From Podarcis cretensis (taxonomy: Eukaryota), in contig OX638149.1 in assembly GCA_951804945.1 (NCBI GenBank), forward strand, positions 37,138,001 through 37,202,000: a stretch of DNA of 64,000 nucleotides. Reading direction: 5' to 3'. Within the stretch, counting starts at the first letter, position 1; the number at the start of each line of letters is the position of its first letter. The translations under genes and the position numbers were made by a program. This document shows, piece after piece, positions 2,016 through 62,759 of the stretch. The notes under the pieces are model-generated. The model had not been told where the DNA came from and made no database searches. It was given only the letters and a program-made list of their open reading frames with translations.

Positions 2016-3737
2016 TAACTCAAATGTGAAGACTGTAGGGCCTGTCCTGGAAGACTGAGGGGTGGGGGAAGCTGGTAAATGGGAATGTCACGACATCTAT
2101 ATTCCAGACTCTTCAGAGGCAGGGGATAAAAACCTTAGACACATGACAGAATTTAACCTCAAGGAACCACACAGCGCATTTACCTTCACCTGCAGCCCTT
2201 GAAGGTAGCGAAGGGCCCCAAAGGCCAAATCCTGCAATGTTATAATCAACAACCTAACTCTTCTCATACAAATGGAGGCAGGAGATACAACTGTCCTCCC
2301 AGGAAATATATACCCTGATGGTTCCAATAACACTAATATAGAGCCACGAAGGCTACCATTCACCCTGGGCTCCTTGGGGAGGAAAGGCATAATATAAATT
2401 TATTTAATCTAATTACATATAGTTTTATTACTAAATTTAGAAAATCCTATATATACTCACTTGCTACCTGGGAGCCAACCCCCTTGAACTCAGGATGAGT
2501 TCAGCTGTTAGGCTTTCTCATTTTCTTCATTTCCCTTTTCTTCATTTCCTTTCCAAATACAAAAACATATACCGTACTTTCGCATGTATACACATGCGTA
2601 TATTGAAGGTGTGAAAGGCTCTTTTCTGTGAGGCCCCATTACCTTCAGTAGCTTAGGGCCTCATCAAACCTAAATCTGACCCTGAGCCGAACTATGAAAT
2701 TCACTTCCACAAAATGTAAAGGATCACATAAATTCACGGTGAACAAGGCTATCAATGGCTACTAGTTATGATGGCTATATTATTATTATTACTGCTGCTA
2801 TAACCATAACTAAAAAAACCCCCCACAAACCGATGTGTAGATGTGAACTCATCTCAATAATGGAAAAATGAGAAATGGAGAGAAGTCAAAACCAAGAGCC
2901 CTCCCCGTTCCTAATTGCTCTACACAATTATACATACAATATAATGAATCTTATAAACTTCCTGACTTTGTTGCTCAGTTCAATCTCATGGCAGGGTCTT
3001 TATATGTACTATGGTGTTTTACGTATTATGATCTTGTTGCTTTTTATTGATTTTAGTTTAGTAATGATTTATTGCAGTTGTTGAGAGTAAATTATTTTAA
3101 ATTATTTCCTGATATTTTGAGAGTTAATTTTATTGCGCAATTTATTCAAAGTGGATTATCAACGATGACCTTATTTCATATAAGTTGCTTCTTTTAAAGT
3201 AATATGTTTTATTGTGACTTTTTTGTATTGGGTCAGATTGTTAGAGGACGTGTGATCCTTGTTGTGTATTTTGTTGCTTCTACAGCTTGTAAGTGGCCTT
3301 GTGTATAGAAAGGCAGTATACAAATTAAAAGTGAAGTGGAATGAATGTAGGGGCTGAGAACGTACTTGCATTTGCATGCATTCACTCCACCAGCATCCGA
3401 TCGCAGAGATTTCAGTTCTGAAGACTCAGAGATAGAACTGAAGCCTGAAGACTGGCAGCTGAAACAAACAATGGCAAAACTGGTGACTCAAATCAGTGGA
3501 AGGTGAGAAGGCTTTCCCCCCACTGCTTCCTTTTCTTGTCAGGTTTTTTCCTTGCCCTCCTGCTGGTTACAGACTGGCATTGTTTTCTTCATGTTCTGGG
3601 GAAATGAGGGGGCCTTGAATCCAGCAGATCAAAAGCCTCCCCCAGTCTGCCCCTGACACGCTCCAAAAACAACCCATTCTTGCCTTTATTGCCTCCAGAG
3701 CAGCTTGGCAATAGCACAGCTTCCCATTACCTATCAT

Positions 3738-4094
3738 AAAGGTAAAGGCAAGGGGACCCCTGACCATTAGGTCCAGTCGCGGACGACTCTGGGGTTGCAG
3801 CGCTCATCTCGCTTTATTGGCCGAGGGAGCCGGCATACAGCTTCCGGGTCATGTGGCCAGCATGACTAAGCCACTTCTGGCGAACCAGAGCAGCACACGG
3901 AAATGCTGTTTCCCTTCCTGCCGGAGCGGTACCTATTTATCTACTTGCACTTTGATGTGCTTTCGAACTGCTAGGTTGGTAGGAGCAGGGACCGAGCAAT
4001 GGGAGCTCACCCCGTTGTGGGGATTCAAACCACTGACCTTCTGATCGGCAAGCCCTAGGTTCTGTGGTTTAACCCACAGCGCCACCTGTGTCCC
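3738..4094 (-). mobile_element. Sauria SINE (subfamily A), full length
   Basis: tRNA-derived head gggacacaggtggcgctgtgggtt on - strand, (ACCTTT)n-type tail, TSD cctatcat. Confidence 0.9.
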
Positions 4095-6760: not shown

Positions 6761-6809
6761 GCCTTCCTCCTGGCTGTATATTCTTTCCATTGGACTTAGC
6801 ATTGTGTTA

Positions 6810-7166
6810 AAGGTAAAGGGTAAAGGGACCCCTGACCATTAGGTCCAGTTGTGGCTGACTCTGGGGTTGCGGTGCTCATCTCACTTTATTGGCCGAGGGA
6901 GCCGGCGTATAGCTTCCGGGTCCTGTGGCCAGCATGAGTAAGCCACTTATGGTGAACCAGAGCAGCGCAGGGAAATGCTGTTTACCTTCCTGCTGGAGCA
7001 GTACCTATTTATCTACTTGCACTTTGACGTGCTTTCGAACTGCTAGGTTGGCAGGAGCAGGGACCGAGCAATGGGAGCTCACCCTGTCGTGGGGATTCGA
7101 ACCGCCGAGCTTCTGATCGGCAAGTCCTAGGCTCTGTGGTTTAACCCACAGTGCCACCCACTTCCC
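6810..7166 (-). mobile_element. Sauria SINE (subfamily A)
   Basis: Homologous to 3738-4094; TSD cattgtgtta (6800-6809 / 7171-7180). Confidence 0.9.
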
Positions 7167-7622
7167 TTTCCATTGTGTTAGCCACACCCTTCTAGGTTAC
7201 TATTCTGCATCTGACCTTTCCTCAACTGCTGTGTTTCATGAGTCTGCTTCACCAGTATTTCAAGCTGAGCCCAAAACAAAACCCAAAGGTCCCAAATCTT
7301 ACCATCTTAATCCTCTGTGTCCAACATCTCTGTGTCATTGCCAAAGTGACACAAAACCCAGGCTGAGAGAGGCCATGGAAGGATTGGAGTTGTCACCAAC
7401 CATCTGGTAATTCCTCACTGGCCTCCATCTGACGCTTTCAAAACTGTGATGGTAAGGCACTGGCAACTCTAGTAAGATGGATTGTAAATGTGAAAATTAG
7501 TGCTAATGTAGAAAGATAAGATGAATATTCAGACTCAGTTGATCTGCTTGAACTTTCAAAGTGTTTCTTTGTACTCTAATGGATGTTCAAGGTGTTAGAC
7601 TGTCCTGAGTATTTGTGAGATA

Positions 7623-7831
7623 CAGTCAAACCTCGGTTCCCGAATGCCGAAAACCTGGAAGTAAATGCTCTGGTTTTCGAATGGTTTTTGAAAGCTGAAC
7701 GTCTGGTTCAGCTTCCACTTGAGTACAGGAAGCTCTTGCAACCAATTGGAAGCCACGCTTTGGTTGTCGAACGTTTTGGAAACTGAATGGACTTCCGGAA
7801 TGGATTACGTTCGACAACCAAGGTTTAACTG
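7623..7831. mobile_element. Tc1/mariner-type MITE, second family
   Basis: ta-cagtcaaacctcggtt...aaccaaggtttaactg-ta. Confidence 0.78.
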
Positions 7832-8367
7832 TATTGTATTTGAAAATGGTAGTCATGATTGGTGCAGGGTTTTGCAAATAAAGGAAAAAGAATTGGTCTA
7901 GGCAGGAAATGGAAAACAAAACAAATACTATACATAACAGCATAAACAGGAAGCATATATTTTAACTGGACAAATATATTTCATTATTAGTAAATGTAAC
8001 ATGCTCTTAACAAAAAGCTTCTAGGAAAAAAGCCTGTTTCCTTCTTAGAAAGACGGTTTCCACCAATGAATTTTAAGGTGTAGTAAAATTATACTTTTTT
8101 AAAAATACGAAATATATTAATAAATTAAGGACAAAAACTGTTGCTGGGAAACTTAATTGCCAGGATATTTATTTCTTCAGCCCAAGGTCAGAGTCAGACT
8201 ATCTTTTATACCTTGGAATTGTTTTAGCGACTACAACAATAAGTTTATTAGAAACAAGAGAACAAATGTAGGTCCTTCTGAAGCCAAAGGATGGTGTCTC
8301 TGGACACTCAATTAATTTCTACGTCTGGCATTTTATCCTCAGGAACTTTGGACACCAAATACTTCTG

Positions 8368-8658
8368 TCAGTTTGGACAGACTGCTGGCTCATGCCTTTG
8401 ATCCAGCACCAACATAGGCATTTGCATGGCTGACTCCTTGTCTCTTTTGAGGCAACGAAACAAAGTTACTATGTCCTTACGGAATTTAGAACTCATGCCA
8501 ATATAGATGAATGGGTTGTAAAAACTGGCAGATTTGGCAAAAAGGCTGGCTAGGCTACTGGTGAGTGCAGGCACCTGAAACCCACATGCTGACCACATGG
8601 AGATGACCGCATAAGGAGACTAGGCCAAGAGAAAGGCTGAACAAATTACAAATGACAC
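8368..8658 (-). pseudogene. Terminal coding exon (TM6-TM7-helix 8) of an OPN5-group / neuropsin-like opsin, probably OPN6-like, with an in-frame TAG at the TM6 Trp
   Basis: After ttcctctag the exon reads VSFVICSAFLLA*SPYAVISMWSACGFQVPALTSSLASLFAKSASFYNPFIYIGMSSKFRKDIV...PN*. The Schiff-base Lys codon is at 8535-8533, with NPxxY and FR motifs following. The phase-0 acceptor is at the same position as the TM6-TM7 exon of OPN5 (VAMLICAGFLIAWIPY). TAG at 8622-8620. Subfamily assignment is from memory. Confidence 0.88.
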
Positions 8659-8905
8659 CTAGAGGAATAGAAAAGAGGTTGAGGGCACCAAATCTGTAAA
8701 TACCACATTTCATTTCACATAATACGGCGATTCTAGAATTACTGCAGTTTTTGGAAGAACATTTTAGTTTTATAACTACGGAAATATCCACTCTAAAGAA
8801 AGGAAAGCTTTTCAAAAACCTCCATGCATTAACTAACTAAATGAAAGGCAGATTTGTTCTCCCTCTCTCTGTTCAAAAAAATCTTATGAAAAATAAGAAA
8901 AAAAT

Positions 8906-9255
8906 GGTGTATGTGGCAGCAAAGTTGGCATCTGGGTTTATTGCAGGCTCTGGTACCAGTGTCCATGTTAAGACTGGTTGCTGTATTATTGTGGGTGAGG
9001 ATTTGTTTAAGATTGGGTGGCTGTCTGTAGGCAATGAAAGGACTACCTCCCACAGCTTGATGCCAACTTTGCTGCCACATACACCCAGACAACACCATCA
9101 CTGGACCCAACAACATCAAACATACCATCTCAGGTCTATTCAATTGGTCATCTTCTAACATACCAAGAACAAACTTAGTTGGTCTCTAAAGTGCTACCGG
9201 ACAATTTTATTTTCCCTCCCGTCTGTGTCAGACTAACACGGCTACCTACCTGTAT
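8906..9255. mobile_element. Rearranged Penelope-like fragment with an internal inversion
   Basis: - strand PFIAYRQPPNLKQIL...ACNKPRCQLCCHI, continued on the + strand, then terminal-repeat sequence ataccaagaacaaacttagttggtctctaaagtgctac...cagactaacacggctacc. Confidence 0.8.
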
Positions 9256-11322
9256 CAAGAAAAAATTGTGTTTTTAAATTTATTTCATTGCATACATATG
9301 TTGTACTGATCCTCTATCCACTATTTAAGGGATAGAGGTCAACAAAGTGAAGGATGGTTAGGTGAGATTTTTCTTCTCTTCCACCCACACACCACCAGAT
9401 GGGGAAAGTGCTCCTTACTTGATCTTTGTTAACTAAGTGTGGCAATTAGTGTTATTTATTTGCAACACATGTATCAAACCCTTCATCAAGGACTTCAGAG
9501 TGATATGGCTGGGATTTCCAGAAAGCCTTCCCTCTAGGTACTTGCAAGACCAGCTTAATGTCATGGACGGAATTAAATCAGGAGGTTTCAGATAAAATTA
9601 GGGTTGACATATTTCAAATAGTAAAATTCCTGATACCCACAAAGTTGTTGAGCATTTTTTGGGATCAAACCCAAATTGTTTAACTTTTGGGGGGAAACCT
9701 ACCCCCCCATAGTGATTTTAAGCTTTTTGAGTGGTTTTCCATGGCATTTTCCCTAACATTTTGCCAATTCAGCAAAATATCCCCCCAAAGCCATTTTTAC
9801 ACCTGAAATCCGGGACATGTCAGGAGTTTTCCTGACGTATGGCAAGCCTAGATAAAATATTGTACTTGAATAAGAATACATTTTCTGCTTATGTGCTTGA
9901 GCAAGGCAGTATCTTTTCACCTCAGACCACTCTCCGTAAAATAGGGATACAAATAAAGCATATCTCGTAAAATAGGGCTACAAAGAAATAAAGAGTTTGA
10001 GAGACCACATTAATTCCTAGATGCCATGAAAATGGAAATGGACCTTGAGTATAAATATTTAGGGAGGAATAAAATGCCTGAATTATTTTAATTTTTAGGC
10101 TCTCAGCCTTCAAGGAAAATGTGGTTTATTATACTTTGCACCGTTTGTCTTCTTTGAAAATAGGCAGGGGTTTCAGATAGTTCTCAAACTTCGAACAAGG
10201 AATGTGTGTCCTAAGTCTTGTGACCACATCTCAATATTTGTTGAGTTGTATCTGACTAAATCATACAGGTCCAGACCCATTGAAATCAATGGGCTTAAAC
10301 CAGTCGTGCCAGTTGGGTCTTCTCTTAATATGATGTGCCTACAGCCAACTCAACAGAATTATCTGACAAAAATGTAAAGCATAATGCCAAATGGTTTTTT
10401 GTCTCCGTTTTGTTTAGCCAGATAGTGACTGATCTCATAGGTCTGCTAAGGAGCAGTTTGGGAGCAAGAACTGTGCTTGATTTTTTGCATTAAAGGACAC
10501 AGTTCTGATCAACAGCAGTGCCATGATAATCCTTTTGCTCTATTTCTATGCTTTTTGTTAAGCTGGGACCAGCTAAGCTGTGGAACCATCAATCTTAGCA
10601 AACTGCTAATAACGATATTGGTCTATTGCTACATTCTCACTTTACTTTCTCAGGTGGACGGGATGGAATCCCATTTCACAACCATGGATTTCAATACTGA
10701 TGATTTCCAGCTGTTTCTCTTCTGCAGACCACATCCTCTCAGTCCAGTCCAGTATCTCTGCCAGTCTGCCTGATATATTCACTGGGGGTGTCTCATTGCT
10801 ATCTCAAATTCAACAGTCCAAGTCTTGACTAATTTTTGTCCCAGGATGGCTTACTCCAGACACACAATCTAGGCTTTATCTTTGACCCTTCTGCTCAACA
10901 CATCAAATCCTTTCCCTAGTTGCGGCCCCTCTCCCTTCTCCTTGTACAACACTTAAAGAACTCCAGCCTTTCTTCTGTACTCTTGGCTAAAACGTTGGTT
11001 TATGCTCTGGCCATACCTGTTGCAATCTTCTTCCCTGGCCATCCCCTATGAACTCTTTTCCTTCTATCCAAAGCACCACTGCCAAAATTATTCATCACTC
11101 TGATTGCTCAGGATCATGACATGCTCTTGACTAGGTACAACCAGAGGTGGCTGCAATGCAAGGATTGAGGGGGAAATGTTGGGCTGATGCGAAACATATG
11201 GATCTTCTAAAGTGGTGGGCAACAAGACAAAATCATGTCCTGTCTCTGATGCCATTTCACATTAGTTCCAAATTATACAGCCGAATTTTAAATTTTTGTT
11301 GGGGGTACCCATACATCAAGTA

Positions 11323-11687
11323 GGGACGCAGGTGGCGCTGTGGGTTAAAGCCTCAGCGCCTAGGACTTGCCGATCGAAAGGTCGGCGGTTCGAATCCCTG
11401 CGGCGGGGTGCGCTCCCGCTGCTCGGTCCCAGCACCTGCCAACCTAGCAGTTCGAAAGCACCTCCGGGTGCAAGTAGATAAATAGGGACCGCTTACCAGC
11501 GGGAAGGTAAACGGCGTTTCCGTGCGCGGCTCTGGCTCGCCAGAGCAGCGATGTCACGCTGGCCACGTGACCCGGAAGTGTCTCCGGACAGCGCTGGCCC
11601 CTGGCCTCTTAAGTGAGATGGGCGCACAACCCCAGAGTCTGTCAAGACTGGCCCGTACGGGCAGGGGTACCTTTACCTTTACCTTTT
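11323..11687 (+). mobile_element. Sauria SINE (subfamily B), young
   Basis: gggacgcaggtggcgctgtgggttaaagcc head, ACCTTT tail, CpGs retained, 14-bp TSD acccatacatcaag. Confidence 0.92.
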
Positions 11688-14211
11688 ACCCATACATCAA
11701 GCTCCGGACAAGTCCAAAAATCACTTATATTGCTGCATTAATTAAACAGTTCTATCCAGTTCAATCCAGATAGTCCTTTATTACTTTCTTCAGCTTCTTG
11801 TTGTTATCGTATATTCCTTTCTTTGCGATCTCTGATAATTTTCACAAGCAGATTGGAAACAGACATGCTCTGTGCGGGTTTTGTACTCTCCAAAGATCAT
11901 ATCGCTCAGGGACAGCCGCTGTTCCTCGCTTCCATTAAAAAAAAAAAAAATATCTTCAGTCTGTCCTTTACTTTTCTCAGACTTGCCCAGTATATCAGGA
12001 GGCTCTGTCAGGTCAAAATTACATTCCAGCAATCCTTCTCATTCCAATGGTCCTGATTCTCCTCCCCCTGTCCTTCTTTCTCCGGCAAATCTGTCTTGGC
12101 GAGACACCATTTTTTGACTGCGTCATAGAATTTTCCTCCGTTCTCATTGTTTACCAATCCTTTCTTTAGCTATAATCCATCCCACACAGTTTTTAACTTC
12201 CTGCTTGTGATTAGTAAAACACAACGATCTTGTTTCTTTCTGGGGTGAAGGGTTATTAATATCACATAGTACAAAGAAAAAAGGTTTTTTTCCTCCACCC
12301 CCTTCATTCCAAACATACAGTCTCTTAATGGTGATTCATCAGAAGATTTACTTATCCGTCCGTCACTCCTGGTCACAGAGATCCATTAATCAGCAGTCTT
12401 ATCTCTCGAGCCTTACTTGATGTATGTGCTTCAGCTTCATTCCAATCGTATGTTACCAATTATAATTCCGAGCTGAAGCTAACCAGCACGCGCTGATTGG
12501 AATCGGCGTCAGGAAGAGCTGACCGCATCGAGGGCTCGTGGCAAGTGACCGGCACCCCCAGACCTCAGATCTGGGGGTGCATTGTGGACACCGCTGGCAA
12601 GGCAGCCCCCCGTCTCCTTGGGGGGGTGGGAAGACTGCACACTTCCCATAGCAGCCTCTTAATTACCTCGTATGGGTCAGAGAGATGTTATTGTCGGCCA
12701 TCTTCCAATGCGCCACCTGGTGACCCCCCCGGTATTCTACAAATCTGAATGGGATTCAACCTAAGTAGATGAGCAGAATGCAAGCGATGCATACAGGTAA
12801 ATGAAAAAATAGAATAATTTCATCTAGTTCAATCACGTCAGACAAAATGGATGTGAACAATATGCCACTTTTAGGACATGAAAAAAACCACCTATCTTAA
12901 GTTGATTATTCAGAACTGTACCCCCAAAAGGTCATCCTTTTATTTTTGAATGAAACACTCCACAGATAAAATCCTTAGTGTAAAATATGCTTAGGTGAAT
13001 GTTCGCCCTGCATCTCAGCTGTTTGTACAAAGCCTACTAATTCTGTCCAAAGTCAGCCTAAATATTTCCCAAAACACTTGATGAAATCTGCACAGCAACT
13101 GGAAATGCGATGAATATATTATTCCATGCTTCTGAAATATCTGTAATGATAATTCTATTTCTAAGCCTAAAAAAACAAAAATAGAGTGTGAAGTTTTCAT
13201 AAACTGGATGAAATGAATTGAATCCAACTCTTTTTTGAGACGAAGGCTTCCTTGAACTCCCTGTAATTTTGTTTTTGGCACTTGATCATGGCTGATGGGA
13301 GCTGCAGTTCGATAGCATCTAGAAGGCCACAGCTAAACCGTGCCTGTTTTGATAAAAAAAGTTTTATGTACTCCTATCTTTGGGGGAAGCTCTGTATTAG
13401 TTTTGGACATTCCATTCAGACTGTTTTGGGGGTCCTTTTCATAAAATGGCTGCAGTCTGGAAGCCACTTGGAAATGGTCTCACAAGGCAGTTTCCTCATG
13501 GAGTAGGCCAATAATCCACACCTGGGTAAGGTCACTTCCTATGCGCCTCTAGCAAACAACATTGCAAAGGAGACTTCCCTGTGCTAGAGGTTCTTAATCA
13601 ATTTAGACAAAAGTCATGGGAATTTAAATAGCAATGTGTGCATGTTACGTCCTTATAACTCACCAGAGAGTCCTTCTCTACACAGAATCAAATTCCCTCC
13701 CATTATTGTTTCTGATCCCATAAATCACTTCAGGGCAATTTGTTTGAAAGGCATATTAGGCACACCTCAGGGACCTTAGCACAGAAAGTTTCCTTCGTAA
13801 CCCTAAACTTCCCCTCAAACTTATTCTGAGACATAATTCCCATTTCCGTCCTTATTCTCCCCTAGCCCCATACATAGGGAAAAATAAAACTGAGTAACAA
13901 ATCAGAGCATTTAGATCTTGATTTCTGTATTTTTTTTTAAAAAAAACCACACACCATTGAATTAATAACCTGGAAAACCATGGTCCAGATTTTCTAGGAC
14001 CCCCTTTCTTTTAAGCAAAGTCCAATATGCCTTGTACAGTATGACCACTCAGGAAAACATAAGAGGAACAAACTGTCTACTTACCTAAGACTTCAAATGA
14101 GACCTGTTACTCTGCAACAGGCTGGAGCTGTCCATCAGCACTACCTACTGTCCGTAGCAGCACACCTACAAGTCAGTGAATGAAGCACCCACAACAGAAT
14201 AAAGACAATAC

Positions 14212-14640
14212 CTAGAATCATAGAATCATAGAGTTGGAAGAGACCACAAGGGCCATCGAGTCCAACCCCCTGCCAAGCAGGAAACACCATCAGAGCACTC
14301 CTGACATATGGTTGTCAAGCCTCTGCTTAAAGACCTCCAAAGAAGGAGACTCCACCACACTCCTTGGCAGCAAATTCCACTGTCGAACAGCTCTTACTGT
14401 CAGGAAGTTCTTCCTAATGTTTAGGTGGAATCTTCTTTCTTGTAGTTTGGATCCATTGCTCCGTGTCCGCTTCTCTGGAGCAGCAGAAAACAACCTTTCT
14501 CCCTCCTCTATGTGACATCCTTTTATATATTTGAACATGGCTATCATATCACCCCTTAACCTCCTCTTCTCCAGGCTAAACATGCCCAGCTCCCTTAGCC
14601 GTTCCTCATAAGGCATCGTTTCCAGGCCTTTGACCATTTT
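14212..14640 (-). mobile_element. CR1 LINE 3' fragment
   Basis: MVKGLETMPYEERLRELGMFSLEKRRLRGDMI...[20 protein letters not shown]; (ATTCTATG)n tail. Confidence 0.92.
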
Positions 14641-16974
14641 GGCCATTTTGCAACCATGCTGTAAGTGCCTATCTGAGGGGATGGATGATGCAATGGCACA
14701 CTCTGTCAGTTGCTCTACATGACTTGAAGTAATTTGTAGCACCATAAATGCTGGAGGCATTCGAAGTTTCGAGGTCTTGACGTTCACAACTGTCTCTGCG
14801 ACCCAGATCTGTCTCGCAGGGCAAGCAGAACAAGGTGATTAGGTGAAAGTGAAGCACCCATTCCAAAAGAACTTGCACTTGCCCCCAGCCTCAGTTTGTA
14901 TTTAGACTAACATAATCGAAGTCTGGAAGGGGCAAAGATAATCTAATGCCTTGAGCGACCTTCCTCACCAGCCAGCATTTTGCTTCCTCCTCCTCAATAT
15001 ACCGAATCTTCCAAATTTTACTATGCAGCAGCCAGAGAACATTAGTGAAGAATATTCCCAGTGCTTGAGGTAGGCCTGCTCAAATGCTAAAACAACTTTA
15101 GATAGCTCAGTGCATTGTGCCATTTCATACATGGGAAATCCCCCCTTGGCAAAAGAATACAAATAGACTGACAAGCCGGGGAATCAACTTGATTGGGGTG
15201 AGGATTGCTTTTCCAGCCCAAGAGCTGCAATTCCCTTATGGGCAGCCTTCAGGGGCCTGCATGCCAGCGTTGGGCAAAAGTTTCCAGAGGCAAAAGTGGG
15301 GGGCAAAATGGACGATTCTTACCTTTTTGCAATGAGCTACATTCTAGCCATAGTCAGAGGTTTCTACCCTTCCACTCCTCACCCTCTTTCTAGAGAAACA
15401 AAAGGCATTGTGATACGATGGTTCGAGGATCCATTCTAGCCACGCAAAATAAATCCAGGATTTATTTGCAGAGGACCGCTGGTGAGAGGCATGGCATTGG
15501 AAAGTTCCCAAGGCTGGGTAGAGAGCCCCAGAAGACTACATTTGACCCTAGGGCCTGAGGTTCACCATCCCTGGACTACATGCTTATCTTGAAGCAAGAT
15601 TGTCTCAAAATTTTGGCACTAGTCCATCTAACCTACTTTTGATAACTTGGAACCAGGTTACATTCAAGCTTGTTTGTATAGCCCTGCCTGGTTAATTTGA
15701 TCCTTGGGAGAGACACTATTGGGCTCTATACTTCTGAGGTTTATTTTATGCCCACTAAGACCAGAACCTGTAGTGTGGCAGTATCTGCCTTTTGGTGTGC
15801 ACTTCCAATTAACATGAGGCAGGTAATTACTGTATTGACATTTATTTACTGGCATAAAACTCACCTGTTCACCCAGGCTTTCCCTGAAGGATTCACAGAA
15901 TCACAGAACTGTGGAGATGGAAGGGATTGCAATGCAGAAATCTCAACAGAGTCCCCTATCCAATGTGAAACCATACTGGACTCTGCTTAACTTTGCAAAT
16001 GTGCTGTTTTTTAAAAAAATTATTATTGCCGTCTCACTAGGCAGTTTCAGCTGTGTTGTATTAATTTAATTGACTGATTTGTGATGTATTTTTCATTTCT
16101 TTTATGAATGTAACCTTGTTAGTGATTTTATGCTGGCTCTGATAGCTTTCTTGATGCTGGTACAGAAAATCTTGCAAATAAATACCGTAACTCCCATGTG
16201 CAGCTTCATTTTCAAAATGCTAATTGTGATACCTAATTTCCCCAGGGTGATGAATGGCCTACGAAAGCTGGATGTACCTTTGTTTGAAATCTGGATTATC
16301 ACTGCCTGTGAAGGTAGGAGCATTTGGAGGGAGGGGGAGGGGCAGTAAAGGATTTGAAGAAAATGGCACAGGGATATACACACTATAAGGGCTATTTTAT
16401 AGCCTTGGTAAAATGCTTGATATGTATTTGAGTTTACTTTAGATAATGTCAATTCATAGAGCAAAGTAACTCATCATTATCAGTGAGACACACAGCTCAC
16501 TCCCTTCCTTCCTTCCTTCCTAATTTTAGAAAGAGTGTCTGAATGGATTTTCATTCACGTTTATATTGGAGTAAGAGATGTGTACATTGCAATTAGTGAT
16601 GCTGCAGGTTGTGGTGTTCTGGTCTGGAAATCAGTTTGGTAATTTGGGATTAGAATTCTACTGAATCTGGGGCTTGGATTAAAATCCCAGTTTATTTCCC
16701 ACCCATCAGCAAAATGGCAGGTGGGGACGCAAAGAGTAATTATTTCTTGTCCCAAGAGTTTTTAGTGGTAGGTTGCTATTTGCGTCCCCCCCCCTGCCAT
16801 TTTCAAGGCTGCAGAGTCCTTAAATCTGTGTTGAAACCCAAGCACTTGGATAAATTCCACCTACATCTGTAATCAATAAAGTTGTGGTCATTTTTAATCC
16901 AGATTGTTGTCTGTCTGAGTTGTTATTAACCATATATTACATGTAGACACTGATGGGGGGGGCAACACTGAGAC

Positions 16975-21086: not shown

Positions 21087-24000
21087 TTATTACTATGTAA
21101 GATTAGCCACTTCTGTTCTAGAAAATGTATGATTACTGCGGATAAACAGTCAAATTTTCTTTTAGTTCTCCAAAGCAAAAAATGTCCATTTAGTAACAAA
21201 ACGTCAGTTTAAACATTCACTTATTTTTATTGCATTAAGTTACTACCACAGATGCTATTTATTATTGTGACTTTAATTACTTTTTTATTTATTTAAGGTA
21301 TTAATACATTTCCCTTCATAATATTTATCTCAGGACAGAATGTGTTTTGATTTACGCCTTATGGGACTTTTTATAGTGGAAATGCAGCATCACATTAAAA
21401 ATAGATAAATATACAAACATATAAATCATGGGCTTCATCCGATGCTGTCCACCCTTGAAGACAACGGACTTCCACTTGCACAACGGGACTTCACCTACCT
21501 CTCTTCCTTTCCTTGTGGTCTCCTTCATGCCGTCAAATCTGCTCTGAAGGGCTGGAGGACACTCTACAGTGGATTTTATTTGGCAGGATAAGTTTCTAAG
21601 GGTCCTCATACAATGACAGATTGTACCTCATGTATTTTGCCAAAGGCAGCTAATTATCCACACAATTTATTTTGCCATAGGGTTTAGATATTTTATTTTT
21701 GCAGTTAAGAGCATTGAACTATTTATATTTGATCGAATCCTAATTTAAAATAGCAGTTTCATGACAAAATAGTCATTTTAAATTGTCATTTTAAATCCTG
21801 TATTTAAATTTTTTTCCCCTCCCTCTCTTCCCCCCCCTATTATGTTTTTACTGTGATTTTATTTTATTGGTGTTAGCTGCCCTGAGCACCCGGCTCTGGC
21901 TGGGAAGGGCGGGGTATAAATATTATTTATTTATTTATTTATTTTCATTATTAATAAATGGGAAAGTATTGAATCATATTTATTTCTTAAATATTTGCAG
22001 TCTGCTTTTCTATTTCAGGGAAATACTTGACATCAATCAACATCAAAATAGTAAACTTCATCTAAAAAATGATAACCACCATAACCAATTTAAAAAACTC
22101 ACCAATAAATCAAAATTTACATTAGATAACATTTTAAAACACTGCAATTTTACTGCCTGCTGGAAGAAGAGCAGGGAAGAAGCCCGGCAGGGCTCCCCTG
22201 GAAAGGGCATTCCATAACCTTGGCACCACAACACAGAAGGCCTTGCCCTCATGCCCACACTTCTGGAATGCCCACAGTGGATGTAATATTCAATTACAAG
22301 ACTGGGAAGAGACTCTGAGCTTGCTCACAGCTCTTTTCCCCAACACAGAGAAGTGAAGGACCAGACCAGGACCTTTAATTGATAGGTAAAGGTAAAGGTA
22401 CCCCTGCCCGTTCGGGTGAGTCTTGCCAGACTCTAGGGTTGTGCGCTCATCTCACTCTATAGGCCGGGAGCCAGCGCTGTCCGCAGACACTTCCAGGTCA
22501 TGTGGCCAGCGTGATGAAGCTGCTCCGGCGAGCCAGCGCAGCACATGGAACGCCGTTTACCTTCCCGCTGGTAAGTGGTCCCTATTTATCTATTTGCACC
22601 CGGAGGTGCTTTCGAACTGCTAGGTTGGCAGGCGCTGGGACCGAACGTCGGGAGCGCACCCCGCCGCAGGGATTCGAACCACCGACCATGCGATCGGCAA
22701 GTCCTAGGCGCTGAGGTTTTACCCACAGCGCCACCCAAGTCCCTTTAATTTTAATTGATACTCCAACATTAAAACCAAATACCGCTATCTCCCTTGTGCA
22801 ATATTGTCTGCACAGGGCTATTATGCTGGGACTGGGTCAAAGTTAGGAGAGAAAAAAAGGTGCAGAATGTGTGTTTTTAGTGTGTACTCATTTTCAGCAA
22901 AAACGTGAATTTTTTTTTGAAGTTATGTTTTGCATTTCTCCTTAGGAGTGACATTTCACATTTTAAATTGCTCATCAACCAAGAACCTAAACACATTTCT
23001 TTACAATTATTTTCTCCTAATTTCTTAAGTAAATGTGTTTAAGGCCAGGGTGTTAAGAATGTTGGAAAAGATTAGCTTATGCTTACTTGACTCTTTGAAG
23101 ATGAAAGGAGCTTACAATCGCTGTTGGATATCATTTAACAAAACTGTAATCACACTAATGATTTCATATAACGGGATCCAATTTTCTGTAAGGAGTGACC
23201 AACTTCTATTATATTTAAAGCAAATGTTCATACCACTGATTTGGAGAAGTACGATCTGTTCTTACCTCCTGAAATGGATTTTTGTTTCTTGGAACTGAGC
23301 TGAAATAAATAAATAAAAACTTTATCAAAAGCTCAGTTAATTTTTAAAAATCAAGCATTCAATATTCATAAACACCTTGAACTATAAAACAGGAGCGTTG
23401 GTCTTGCCTAAAATGTGTTTGTGACTGGGTATTAATATTCCTCTAAGTGGGACTCTGTTCCTTCTCCTGCTTGCCAGGTTCAGGCTTGGGGCATTTGGTG
23501 ACAATGCAATTAGAGAACCTGCTGCTCTAGAGGGCTTCAGCTGACCTTTAGTGGTTCAAAAGACAGAAATTGCCACTGTTCAAGCTTCTAAAAATTTTTC
23601 AAAGCTCCTAAAATCAACCACATATTCTCAAACTAACCATTTCAGGGTTGTCAGGAACAGAACTTTCAGCCATCAAATGCTTGGGTTAACAGGAATGTTT
23701 TAAAATTTATCCTAAAAGTTCATAGTGAGGAAGACGGACACAATTTATTAGGGAGGGCATTCCACAAATGAGGGAATGTCAAACGCCCTGTCACTGATCA
23801 CTGCCAACCAGGGAACCCTTAGTAGTGGGTCCACTAACAGGGCCTCCTCTGCTGATCATAGGGCCCAAGATGGTTGATATTGAGAATGGCACTCAGTCAC
23901 CTAAACATTTAACTTAAACATTAGAAAAGCACATCCCCAAACACATGAGTTGTAGTGGAGTTCTGTCCAGACAAGAGAACTTCATCTTTTTCTCCTCTTT

Positions 24001-29600: not shown

Positions 29601-32600
29601 TCCCTGGCATTATGTGGCCAAAGCAGCAGCACCCATGTAGATGGGAGATATCTATGGACTATAGGGAAAAAATCCTAAGGAGTTCAGAGAGAATGGTTTA
29701 TTAAAGATCTGAATACCACAGGTCAGGTTCTGAGTGGTTTACAACATTTCTGCAGCATTGTCTAGTGGCATTAGACCACTACTACAGGCTGGAGGACTGT
29801 GCTGAGATAGAACAGCATACAGCAGACCTGCAATGTAGTCCAATGTTCATATAAAGCTATTTAAGCGGTCTTGATAATATATTTATAGGAAGTGATCTAG
29901 AATTATTAAAAAATACAATAAATGCTTCCAATTTCCTGTCACTGCCAAATACATATTTCTTTATTTCAAGAAAACACACCAAAGCTCCTCACAAATTTGG
30001 TTAGTTGTGACCAAATATTTGGCAACATTTCAGAATTTAGCTTCAAGTGTGGTGGCTGGGGAAGCTAGAAAGACCATATGAGTAAACATGTTTAGGACTG
30101 CATTGCCAAGCAGTTAACTTTTATAGCGTTCTTTCTTAGGGGTATAAAACGCTTTCTTGAGATCCTCAATGTTGCCTACCTTTACTTTTCAGGACAGGGC
30201 ATCTATGGACAAGAATTTTACACTTAACACACTGAAGTTGCTCTGTTTCTTTGTGCCCACAGAGGCAAGTGGTGAAAGAATGCCTGCACATAGTACTGGA
30301 GTGAAAATAGCAGATTGCTTGTAAATCTCCTACTTTTAAACTCCAGAAGAACATGTGCCTGTCAACCTGACTCAGGCCTGCATTTTCTATGCTCTGTCTA
30401 CAGCCAGTGCCACAGCATACTACCAAGTAAGAGCAAAACATTGGGAAGGATTCCTAATGAAATTGTGTGACCGTTTCATAAAAAATCCATACCTCAGAAG
30501 GACACTGTACACAACTTATGTAATATATAAGAAACAGTCTCATCTTGTCCTCTGCAGTTCCCGCTGAGGAAAGAAAAGTTCTGAATTAATTTTCTCTCTC
30601 TTAATAATAATCATCTGCGTAATTAAAAACAATTTGGTATACAATATCATAGGCAGGAAGTAAAACTTTGAATTGTTTCAATGAAGTGAACTAAGTTTAG
30701 CAGCATACAACAAAAGTTTTATATACAACTAAATAAGCAGCCCTTAAAAAAAAAAGAGTACTGTAAACAGTTAAAATCTTTAGCAGGGATGCAATGACAC
30801 TTGTAATGTGGAATGATTTAGGATAATTATGGTAGTATAACAGATGGATAATGGTAAAAGATGCTGCAAATTTAATCTTAAACATGGAATCCATGGAGGG
30901 AGAGAAGGAGGTCCGAAGGTTCAAAAGAATGTTTGAAATGGTTATATTAAATATGTATAAAATTATTTTAAAAACCAATAAAAAATTATAATAAAAAATA
31001 AAAAGAGTACTCATGAGGCATGATATTAAGCCTGAAGTATGGGAAGTTGCCATCAGAGGAGGAGGATTTGTCAAGACAAAGCTATCACTCTGGGAGTGTG
31101 ACACAGCTATCGCATCTCTGAAGGACTTTTCCACCAGTTGTTCCAAGTCAGCCTACTTGGCCTCAAGGGAAGGTACTTGTTGCCTGAGGGCCAGGAGCTC
31201 ATTGAATCGAGGATACACCCACCACTTCTGTCCAGCAGGCAGCTAGTAATACATGTGACATTCTGTACAATACACTGGATATCGCTCATCCCTGTTGTCT
31301 TTCAACCTGTCTGTTTTTGTAGCCTATTGAAATAGTTTTCTAGGGAGCTTAGAATTTGTTAGTTCACAAAGGAGAAGGGCAAAGTAGTCTGCCCTAGCCT
31401 TCTCACCCTGCAGCTGAACTCGCCTGCTACCTTGGCTTGATGCTTTGTTACTGGGGTTAAGATGCTGAGCTAGCTGGGGTTCTTTATAGCCCTGGCTAGC
31501 ATCCTCTACTTGCTGAAGCAATTGGACCAGGAGTTCCTGAGGCCTACCCTTTGACTTTAGTTTGTAAGCTGAATGTGCAAACTTTAGAAGACTTGCCAAA
31601 TTTTAAAAGCTAAGACTTTTAAAGAATAAACATACCAAACAATTTCATACAGTGATATATTGTGTATGATATGATATCCGACCGGCAGTGGCATTTCAAG
31701 TTCCCAGGCAGAAAGTCTTTAATAGCATGAGCTTGCTTATATGGTGACAATTCTCAGAATGTTATGAACCGAAAGAAACTTTATTTTTTTTACTTACCAT
31801 CAGGATCAGAAATCATGTCCAAAAGTGATTTATCCAAGGTGGACTTGCTCATGATTTTTTCTTCATATTCAAAATACAAATCTAGTTTCCGTGTCTTTAA
31901 ATTAAATAAAAACAGATTTGTTGTTAGAATATCATTACTGCAGTAGATTTGATTAGCTACTTTTAATATATGAAACTGTTCATATGGTGATTTTCCTCAG
32001 CCTGGGATAACCTATGATTAGAGATTGGAAGCAGGTCTCAGAATCATATTTGTACACTCCTTCTTACAGTGGGAGAAAAAAAGTCTGAATAAGGGGAGCC
32101 AACATTCAAATAACCACACAATATGTTAGTTTGGTCATTCTCTTCTTCCCATGATCAGAAGTGAGAAAGTAGCATTCAAACCTGTCTTAAGACCTGTATT
32201 TATATAACATTTATATACTATCTTTCTTCCATGAAACTCAAAGCAGCATACATGAAGTGCCTAAAGGTAAAGGTAAAGGTACCCCTGCCCGTACGGCCCA
32301 GTCTTGACAGACTCTGGGGTTGTGCGCCCATCTCACTTAAGAGGCCAGGGGCCAGCGCTGTCCGGAGACACTTCCGGGTCACGTGGCCAGCGTGACATCG
32401 CTGCTCTGGCGAGCCAGAGCCACACACGGAAACGCCGTTTACCTTCCCGCTGGTAAGCGGTCCCTATTTATCTACTTGCACCCGGAGGTGCTTTCGAACT
32501 GCTAGGTTGGCAGGCGCTGGGACCGAGCAGCGGGAGCGCACCCCGCCGCAGGGATTCGAACCGCCGACCTTTCGATCGGCAAGCCCTAGGCGCTGAGGCT

Positions 32601-33242
32601 TTAACCCACAGCGCCACCTGCGTCCCTTACATGAAGTGCCTAGGTAGTCTCAAAACCAAGCACTTATCAGATTCAAATGTGCTCATCTTCAGCAAGGTTG
32701 CTATACTATGTGCCTTTAGACTGTGTTCTGGGGTCTTTGCTATAGTAGTACACACATTCTACTCATGTAAAAACACTAGGCAGGCCCCACAAATAAACCA
32801 GAGATGCATTTTAAATAAAAGGACACATTCTACTCATGTAAAAACATGCTGATTCCCGAACCGTTCGCGGGCCGGATTTAAAAGGCGATTGGGCTGGATC
32901 TGGCCCCCGGGCCTTACTTTGCCTACCAATGGTGTACACAAGTGCAAAATGATGCATTTTGAGGCAGAAAATCTTCATTTTATATATACTCTTATGAGGC
33001 CTGAATTGGCGGTGACTGACCAAAACGAGATCTTGGGGTCAGAGTGGATAGCTTGATGAAGATGTTGGTTGAGTGTGTGGCAGCTGTGAAAAAGGTAGCC
33101 CAGAGTTTAGTGCTATGCAAGAGGCAGACAAACAAAATGACTTTCTAGAAGGGCCTTAGGCCCCTGTAAAGCAAAAAAGTACTTGATGGCCACCATGCAG
33201 GGGAAGGTGCTAATTGTTCTGCAAATATTTCAGGTCTTTAAC

Positions 33243-60372: not shown

Positions 60373-60725
60373 CTGGATGTGGGTGGCACTGTGGGTTAAA
60401 CCACAGAGCCTCGGACTTGCTGATCAGAAGGTCAGCGGTTCGAATCCCCGCGACGGGGTGAGCTCCCGTTGCTCTGTCCCTGCTCCTGCCAACCTAGCAG
60501 TTCAAAAGCACGTCAAAGTTCAAGTAGATAAATAGGTACCGCTCTGGCGGGAAGGTAAATGGCGGTTCCGTGCGCTGCTCTGGTTCGCCAGAGGCGGCTT
60601 AGTCATGCTGGCCACATGACCTGGAAGCTGTACGCCAGCTCCCTCGGCCAATAAAGCGAGATAAGCACCGCAACCCCAGAGTCGGTCACGACTGGACCTA
60701 ATGGTCAGGGGTCCCTTTACCTTTT
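60373..60725 (+). mobile_element. Sauria SINE (subfamily A)
   Basis: Homologous to the 3738 and 6810 copies; TSD agtcacttga. Confidence 0.9.
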
Positions 60726-61831
60726 AGTCACTTGAAGACCTTTGGGTAACAAATGACTGACAAGTCAAATAACAGTATTTAAAAAAAATATAATTTAAAG
60801 GTGCTTTATGGGATAATTATTCTTACTGAGCAATATTACCACCAGAAATGTGTAGGTCCAGAGCCCTACAGCTTCCAAACCATCTTCATGGCAGGGGAGG
60901 AGGAAAAGTGTGCCAGAAGGAATAGTCTTCTTCCCATTGGAGCAAATGGCATGGGGATGGCATGTTCCGGCTCATTATGTGGCATAATTTCTAGCATGTT
61001 TGTGTCACTGGGATTTCAGGGTGTTAGGATTCAGCACATTTGCTTCTTCATGCTGCTGCCCATTCTCAAGGACCAGCAGGCCAAACATTGCAATAATGTC
61101 CTACCTTCCAAGGAGCTCAAAGGGACAAAGAGTTTTGCTCCTCCCCATTTGCAGGGTAGGGATTTCAACCCTGGTCTCCCAGGTTTATCCACTACATCAA
61201 TAGTGTAGCCTTTGTGAAGTGTATAGAAGCATTTTCAGAGGCATGTTTTTGGTGGAAGTGGGTAGTCTAAATTTGGGAATTTTTCTGTCTCATCCTTCAA
61301 CCCCTCAGTGGAAACACTAAGTTTAGTTTATAATCTTTTCCATAAGTACCTGAACAGGAATCATATAAAATATATAAGAATGGGAGTCCCCTATCACACT
61401 TTAGGAAGAAATAAATCAGTGTCATTTGTGAATCTTCAGAGCTATAATATACCAATTTTATTTGTAAAATGAAGCTAGGTAAGTAACCCTGGACTACGAT
61501 AGAAGATATTCCTGTTTGCACTATTAACATTGTATGGTAACATGAGTATTATCATGAATCTCAGATGAAGCAACACCATTGTTGCACATGAACATCCTCA
61601 AAAGAATCAAGTCCAACTACATTTGAATGCATATATATTTAATACTGTTAACTGACACATCGTTGATTTATTGCACTTTATATACAGTACATGTAAATGA
61701 CGGTTCTCCCATAATACATTGCTGCAAGTAATAGAAGAGCAAACAGACACTGGAAGCCATAGAAAGCCCCAGGAAATAGATATTAAAGTTTTAAACAAAA
61801 ACTAATATTTACAAACTTATAATTGTACATG

Positions 61832-62182
61832 TGGGTTAAAGCCTCAGCGCCTAGGGCTTGCCGATCGAAAGGTCGGCGGTTCGAATCCCTGCGGCGGGGT
61901 GCGCTCCCGCTGCTCGGTCCCAGCGCCTGCCAACCTAGCAGTTCGAAAGCACCTCCGGGTGCAAGTAGATAAATAGGGACCGCTTACCAGCGGGAAGGTA
62001 AACGGCGTTTCCGTGTGCGGCTCTGGCTCTGGCTCTGGCCAGAGCAGCGATATCACGCTGGCCACGTGACCCATAAGTGTCTCCAGACAGCGCTGGCCCC
62101 TGGCCTCTTAAGTGAGATGGGCGCACAACCCCAGAGTCTGTCAAGACTGGCCCGTACGGGCAGGGGTACCTTTACCTTTACC
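61832..62182 (+). mobile_element. Sauria SINE (subfamily B), slightly 5'-truncated
   Basis: TSD taattgtacatg; ACCTTT tail. Confidence 0.9.
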
Positions 62183-62759
62183 TAATTGTACATGCAAATT
62201 TGTATTCTACACTATTTCTACATAATGCTAATTGTTTAATCCCCCCCACCCATGAAAGAGTTCAATCATACAGAAATGGTGCCTTCCTTTAATCCAAATT
62301 ACAGAACAAAAAAAATCAATGAATTTAAGAATGCTATGATAAAAGCATTCAGTGAAGTGTTAAAGGTACCTGAGCTGCCAAAAGGAATACTGTTGCCCTG
62401 AATTGACATCTATTTGCGGATTCCATTCATTTGCAGTTTATCCTACTTATGCTAGTATAGATGTAGCATTACAACTCTAATAAAGTAGTACATATTCAAA
62501 TAATCACAATTAGGAGGACTTAAGAGGTTCACATCCTGTGCACAGAGGTTTTAAGGCAGAAATAGCACAACAGCATTTTCTTTACTCCTAGTACTTTAAC
62601 CCAACAAACGGCTAAGCTAACAAGGTCATAAAATCACAAAGTGCAAAGAATAGATTGCCAGGATGCACTAATCATGGGAAGTAAATTAAATCCACAGATA
62701 CTGCAATATAAAATACAATGATCAAGACTTCTGTAGGGAACACAGATTATACAGTAGAC

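Follow-up and report, generated by a model that had tools for sequence, protein, structure and literature searches.

OPN6 genes are known in fishes, amphibians, reptiles, birds and monotremes (PMC4617963; PMC10547888), and OPN6b was described in zebrafish (Davies et al. 2015; PMC4617963). Pseudogenes of other non-visual opsins are described in squamates, including, for geckos and snakes, OPNPP, OPN4M and OPN5L2 (Emerling 2017, 10.1101/127654) and, for lizards that have no parietal eye, OPNP, OPNPP, OPNPT and OPNLEP (PMC12043008). In the searchable literature we found no report on the state of OPN6 or OPN6b in lizards, or on OPN6 synteny. The locus described here lies in a 64,000-nucleotide stretch of lizard DNA, the whole of which was analysed and is referred to below as the window. 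It resembles the squamate opsin pseudogenes in that a non-visual opsin has been reduced to recognisable exons, with nonsense mutations, missing exons and an intact flanking gene, but it is a different opsin and it adjoins SCFD1. OPN5L2, in contrast, is reported to lie between CDC5L and MUT.

The closest described proteins are the annotated OPN6b proteins of turtles, Elgaria and Pogona, although the remnant in the window is very probably no longer a gene. It shares with OPN6b the position of an intron, the motif AWSPY (here A-stop-SPY), the motif FAKSASFYNP with the retinal lysine, NPxxY, and the FRKD of helix 8, and it has the same terminal stop as Pogona OPN6b. It differs from OPN6b in having two in-frame TAG codons and no exons for TM1–TM5. 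A more distant comparison is the amber/W site of the hepatitis delta virus antigenome, with which the locus shares only the triplet, a UAG where the ancestral residue is tryptophan; unlike the viral site, the codon here is not enclosed in a duplex, is not covered by RNA reads, and lies in a frame that recoding would leave incomplete. We regard the locus as an ordinary unitary opsin pseudogene, apparently undescribed. The features of the locus are listed in Table 1.

Table 1. Positions of opsin-related features in the window (position 1 is the first nucleotide).
Feature	Position	Strand	Content or basis
Last coding exon of the probable OPN6b pseudogene	8658..8368	minus	TM6, TM7, helix 8 FRK, C-tail
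In-frame TAG at the TM6 Trp	8622-8620	minus	AWSPY in all relatives; rhodopsin W265
Splice acceptor with polypyrimidine tract	8659..8680, AG at 8660-8659	minus	sequence inspection
Native stop TGA of the last exon	8370-8368	minus	Pogona protein ends at the same position
Retinal Lys codon AAA, TM7	8535-8533	minus	cone opsin/rhodopsin alignment
Probable 3' UTR	8244..8367	minus	AATAAA at 8249-8244 (signal scan)
Exon 1 remnant	14085..14135	minus	ATG 14135-14133, MDSSSLLQSNRSHLKS, in-frame TAG 14087-14085
Donor-like GTAAGT that immediately follows the exon 1 TAG	14079..14084	minus	putative exon 1 donor
Interval between the remnants	8681..14078	minus	no exons for residues ~20-243; partly interspersed repeats

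A sequence-only reading of this DNA had proposed an opsin exon behind a clean polypyrimidine-AG acceptor, with a TAG codon in place of the TM6 tryptophan, and every coordinate of that proposal agrees with our analysis. The acceptor has the minus-strand context ...ttctattcctctag, followed directly by GTG TCA TTT..., and the exon translates as VSFVICSAFLLA, the internal TAG, SPYAVISMWSACGFQVPALTSSLASLFAKSASFYNPFIYIGMSSKFRKD...AVCPN and the terminal TGA; the part between the two stops reads SPYAVISMWSACGFQVPALTSSLASLFAKSASFYNPFIYIGMSSKFRKDIVTLFRCLKRDKESAMQMPMLVLDQRHEPAVCPN. The open reading frame list included only the part after the internal stop, as had been stated, the frame there starting at the ATG at 8598. 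The exon pieces on either side of the TAG were searched separately, and the TAG was entered as X in the phylogenetic trees. Among solved structures, the best matches of the 83-residue piece after the TAG are cone opsins and rhodopsin (E=4e-6), and in this alignment FAKSASFYNPFIY of the exon lies opposite FAKSATIYNPVIY of the cone opsins. AKS is aligned to the retinal lysine (rhodopsin K296), NPFIY corresponds to the NPxxY motif, and the FR of helix 8 is likewise kept, all as had been claimed. SPY is aligned with the proline and tyrosine of the WxPY motif in TM6, which places the TAG at the tryptophan equivalent to rhodopsin W265, and tryptophan is present at this position in every relative compared. 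A Pfam search with the 83-residue piece left 7tm_1 below threshold; an OPN6 profile compared with 3338 six-frame segments of the window matched the same piece with E=3e-31. The opsin match of the exon is far beyond chance.

The terminal TGA of the exon could be regarded as a second nonsense mutation, given that a turtle-like reading frame (P0001) continues past it. This reading was rejected on finding that in Pogona the protein terminates at the same ...ACPN, which makes the TGA the native squamate stop. Minus-strand sequence 3' of this stop (8211-8367) gives a translation that resembles the longer C-terminal tail of turtles (QKYLVSKVPEDKMPDVEIN compared with QREFVSKVPEAETPGLDMD), and beyond a frame shift the likeness continues, with CSLVSNKL..AKTIPR corresponding to CSPVSNQL..VKTIQR of the turtle. 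Because a turtle-like tail persists past the TGA, the squamate stop appears to have shortened an older and longer tail.

Several lines of evidence bear on which opsin the exon derives from. A HMMER search of 1.84 billion representatives gave 28 matches below 1e-10, the best of which are OPN6 proteins; the named matches are teleost 'opsin 6, group member a' as well as frog 'opsin-5-like' proteins, together with a partial bird protein. Two word searches with full-length relatives as queries show two types of OPN6 in tetrapods: an 'a' type of 397-399 residues in birds, crocodiles, snakes, geckos and agamids, and a 'b' type in frogs, five turtles and only two lizards, Elgaria multicarinata (P0173) and Pogona vitticeps (P0196). 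The two lizard OPN6b proteins are automatic predictions of 316-317 residues and are possibly incomplete. The exon is identical to Elgaria at 69/74 residues (93%), to Pogona at 83/96 (86%) and to a turtle at 61/74, and the lizard and turtle proteins recovered by word search have 70-93% identity to it. As OPN6b proteins are, frogs apart, predicted in these searches in only the turtles and these two lizards, survival of the gene in squamates appears to be patchy.

The trees agree with these matches. In a tree of the exon region the window lies within a 34-row OPN6 clade (support 95/97), apart from OPN8, peropsin and other OPN5-like proteins. In a tree of full-length relatives, in which the window contributes residues to only 24% of the columns, the window lies in a reptile OPN6b clade (98/97) nested within an OPN6b clade (98/98) that includes the named opn6b sequences from zebrafish, gar, bichir, sharks and coelacanth, and it is apart from OPN6a. 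The gene structure is also shared, with an intron directly before VS(F/I/L)xIC in TM6 at the same position in the window and in the OPN6 relatives; reading frame fragments of the relatives (P0001, P0002, P0003, P0006 and P0127) cross from this intron into VS(F/L/I)xIC at the same residue, and the acceptor at 8659/8658 matches them, in keeping with the earlier suggestion that the exon boundary is that of the OPN5 group. These sequence relationships place the exon with OPN6b, within the OPN5 (neuropsin) group, which narrows the earlier call of an OPN6-like or OPN5-group opsin.

The last exon had been described as an orphan, but a second remnant of the gene is present upstream. In tblastn searches, residues 1-12 of the Elgaria protein (MDSSSLLQSNRS) align to 14135..14100 (minus) with 12/12 positions identical (10/12 for turtles), on the correct strand and in the correct order relative to the last exon. 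The frame of this exon 1 remnant ends TCT TAG, with GTAAGT immediately following, where relatives have ...SSFGVSE; this second TAG sits at a position at which the relatives carry glutamate and not tryptophan. The last exon is thus not strictly an orphan. Similarly, the statement that the TM6 TAG is the only lesion holds for the last exon by itself and fails for the gene.

The missing exons were sought with several queries. Residues 20-243 (TM1–TM5) of frog, fish, lamprey, turtle and lizard OPN6 gave zero tblastn matches on either strand of the 64 kb, and full-length OPN6 queries from frog, teleosts, lamprey and shark matched the last exon alone in the 64 kb. A six-frame search with an OPN6 profile, all filters disabled, likewise gave nothing in the window beyond the last exon. 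No single reading frame of the window contains seven transmembrane helices; what is present is TM6, TM7 and helix 8, interrupted by the TAG. The opsin relic extends from 14135 to about 8245, and its inner 5.4 kb contains interspersed repeats and no opsin exons. From their absence in the window we infer that the inner exons were lost by deletion.

Taken with the two in-frame TAG codons, the absence of the TM1–TM5 exons supports the reading put forward earlier as the simplest, that of a dying gene. We consider it very probable that we are dealing with the 3' end of a unitary OPN6b pseudogene, inactivated by the lesions proposed here, and that no opsin is made from it. In this explanation OPN6b, one of two OPN6 paralogues, would once have lain just downstream of SCFD1 on the same strand, and would have been inactivated in this lizard lineage by at least three lesions: replacement of the TM6 tryptophan codon TGG by TAG, the in-frame TAG that closes exon 1, and the loss of the internal exons encoding TM1–TM5. 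The two surviving exons would be almost unchanged because purifying selection was long and death was recent, although death would have preceded the split of the sampled congeners. We infer that no opsin can be made from the locus, whereas OPN6b proteins are predicted in the related lineages (Elgaria, Pogona and five turtles). By analogy with the other opsins, loss of OPN6b here would be the usual fate of squamate non-visual opsins, and a recent loss beside an intact SCFD1 would add one dated point to the history of reptile non-visual opsins. Genome annotations should label the exon a remnant of a pseudogene instead of a partial opsin gene, and the main value of the locus lies in such annotation and in the map of opsin losses.

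The pattern of divergence around the last exon is more complex than this explanation would suggest. We aligned reads or contigs of four runs to positions 7400-10400; those of organisms D and H are DNA and come from other studies. The contig of organism D (8117-8935) has one difference from the window, at 8201, and that of organism H (7807-8970) has twelve. Over 8202-8813 (612 bases) the window differs from organisms D and H at 0 and 1 positions respectively, compared with 6 and 7 positions in the adjoining 297 bases (7905-8201). This is a dip of approximately ten-fold, as other unique stretches, including 9319-10400, differ by 1.4-2%. Relative to the adjoining 297 bases the dip has Fisher p values of about 0.001 and about 0.002, and relative to the wider background it has Poisson probabilities of 0.0015 and 6e-6, although in each case the two comparisons have history in common and are not independent of each other. 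The block consists of the exon, the presumed 3' UTR and about 155 intron bases, and it runs into a repeat at its upstream side; at the other side, differences resume at 8201, just beyond the AATAAA signal. A dip of this kind is unexpected for a freely drifting pseudogene, is left unexplained by the plain-pseudogene reading, and counts against it.

One way to account for the dip is a dead opsin whose terminal exon and UTR have been retained for another use, with the candidates including a non-coding transcript, a regulatory element of SCFD1 or of the next gene, and a TM6–TM7 protein translated from the ATG at 8598 (a 76-residue reading frame). This would fit not only the low divergence in two relatives and the return of differences just past the poly(A) signal, but also the intact acceptor, stop and poly(A) signal, and a contig of low depth (259 nt, depth 2) at 8286-8544 in run X17. 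However, X17 is only guessed to be RNA, its contig stops short of the TAG, and the run also covers about 10.2-10.3 kb, a presumptive intron, and thus resembles DNA or unspliced RNA. Transcription of the exon, which had been raised with the original proposal, was likewise not seen in RNA-seq run X24, where the part searched (12% of the letters of this one run, 1.9 billion) has 0 reads on 7905-8813, and all 46 mapped reads lie on the flanking high-copy repeats; the block is therefore not a common 3' exon of SCFD1. An Rfam search over 7900-14400 gave no match. Because the dip takes in about 155 intron bases as well as the UTR, it is not a coding signature. In groups whose species differences derive largely from ancestral polymorphism, short blocks with shallow ancestry are common, and a locally shallow genealogy in a young species group suffices to explain the dip. 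We therefore regard retention for another use as improbable, and consider it a shade less probable still that the terminal exon and 3' UTR were taken over after the death of the opsin and remain under selection in the genus; such a takeover, if true, would explain both the dip over 8202-8813 and the rise past the poly(A) signal.

The TAG itself could alternatively stem from a mistake in assembly or sequencing, or from a rare null allele carried by the sequenced animal, as might be suspected of a single-base change in an otherwise clean exon. Sharing of the TAG was checked at the last exon, and the codon is present and unchanged in the DNA contigs of both organisms, with 0 of the twelve differences of organism H falling at 8620-8622. 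In addition, 16 DNA runs under eight organism labels contain 94-100% of the sampled words of 8200-8800, and four of these runs contain all of them. The TAG is thus no artefact of the assembly, and it arose before these forms split; it is fixed, and is not private to one animal. As the remaining lesions are independent of the TAG base, error or a rare allele is a very improbable account of the locus, and neither the assembly error nor the polymorphic null allele entertained in the sequence-only reading survives these comparisons.

Returning to the OPN6b pseudogene, the amount of change in the exon bears on when the gene died. Over 74 shared columns the window has two lineage-specific states (tryptophan to stop and valine to serine), Elgaria has two and Pogona has three, and the end branch of the window in the tree of full-length relatives is short (0.021). 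As there is no excess of lineage-specific residue changes relative to the intact relatives, gene death appears to be recent, and the low level of change points to purifying selection for nearly the whole time since these lizard families parted. The sole exon difference of organism H is a T>C at 8556 (plus strand), which converts AGC (Ser) to GGC (Gly); with serine in the window, glycine in organism H, and valine in Elgaria, Pogona and turtles, there have been at least two successive replacements at this codon. These observations are consistent with a gene that died late and yet before organisms D and H and the form represented by the window diverged, the window differing from both organisms by about 1.4-2% in neutral flanks of the exon block.

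UAG is the triplet favoured by ADAR, and the sequence-only reading had suggested that A-to-I editing could in principle restore the tryptophan. The structure of the gene argues against such a rescue, since with the TM1–TM5 exons absent and a second TAG in exon 1, recoding of UAG to tryptophan would restore no opsin, and because the exon 1 TAG replaces glutamate, editing there would not regain the ancestral residue. The 281 nt around the TM6 TAG fold no better than shuffled sequences (z=+0.5; 137 of 200 shuffles were at least as good), and in a search for a duplex over the TAG the only nearby inverted repeat (19 nt, 84% complementarity) lies beside the codon and misses it. Editing as a route to a working receptor is thus not supported and is close to excluded. 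That a functional opsin is still made, whether by ADAR editing of UAG to tryptophan or by readthrough of the stop codon, is the least probable of the explanations, even though the triplet is a favoured one and the exon, apart from this codon, is intact and shows unusually low divergence among congeners, as the TAG has no coverage by RNA reads and the gene is lacking in the parts described above. A lone clean nonsense codon in a well-kept exon is no ground for proposing recoding before the rest of the gene has been found.

Most of the window is filled by a Sec1-family gene, complete or nearly so, at 18060-58600 on the minus strand. Its exon 1 is found near 58.4-58.6 kb, where the sequence is CpG-rich, and the last of its coding exons (LSQLGQK-stop) is near 18.06 kb. 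Matches to Pfam Sec1 were obtained for three of its exons, in order, with one above threshold (E=2.8e-16) and two weaker and below it, and yeast Sly1 is the best match among solved structures. Long stretches also appear to agree with human SCFD1, and we read the gene as SCFD1, the Sly1 homologue. The opsin relic lies about 4 kb downstream of the end of SCFD1 on the same strand, and SCFD1 bounds the space upstream of it, so that there is little room for the missing opsin exons.

Two other opsin loci were considered as sources of the remnant and were rejected. One is the OPN5L2 locus between CDC5L and MUT, for which short motif probes based on human CDC5L and MUT gave no convincing match: only two four-residue GGVW matches were found in the window, the longer motifs were absent, and the neighbouring gene is SCFD1. 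The other is lepidopsin (OPNLEP), which belongs to the OPN1 group, has TNNC1 and RPL29 as neighbours and has a different exon structure (PMC12043008); the best matches here are all OPN6.

Repeats lie around and within the locus. Very high-copy interspersed repeats at 7602-7904 and 8814-9318 flank the block that contains the last exon, with summed contig word depths of up to about 380,000. The repeat at 8814-9318 includes a perfect 27-nt inverted repeat (8906-8932/9059-9085) and a 118-residue reading frame without a Pfam match. A further repeat-like reading frame of 182 residues, also with no Pfam match, is at 14293-14838 on the minus strand and ends about 160 bases upstream of the opsin ATG. 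It looks like the tail of a LINE, and a LINE-like insertion in the former opsin promoter may constitute a further lesion. A SINE-like family of approximately 350 bases is represented by at least seven copies in the window that are 78-98% identical to each other, located at 6808-7168, 3737-4086, 11316-11690, 22384-22746, 32262-32634, 60375-60726 and 61830-62183; the copy at 11316-11690 lies between the two opsin remnants.
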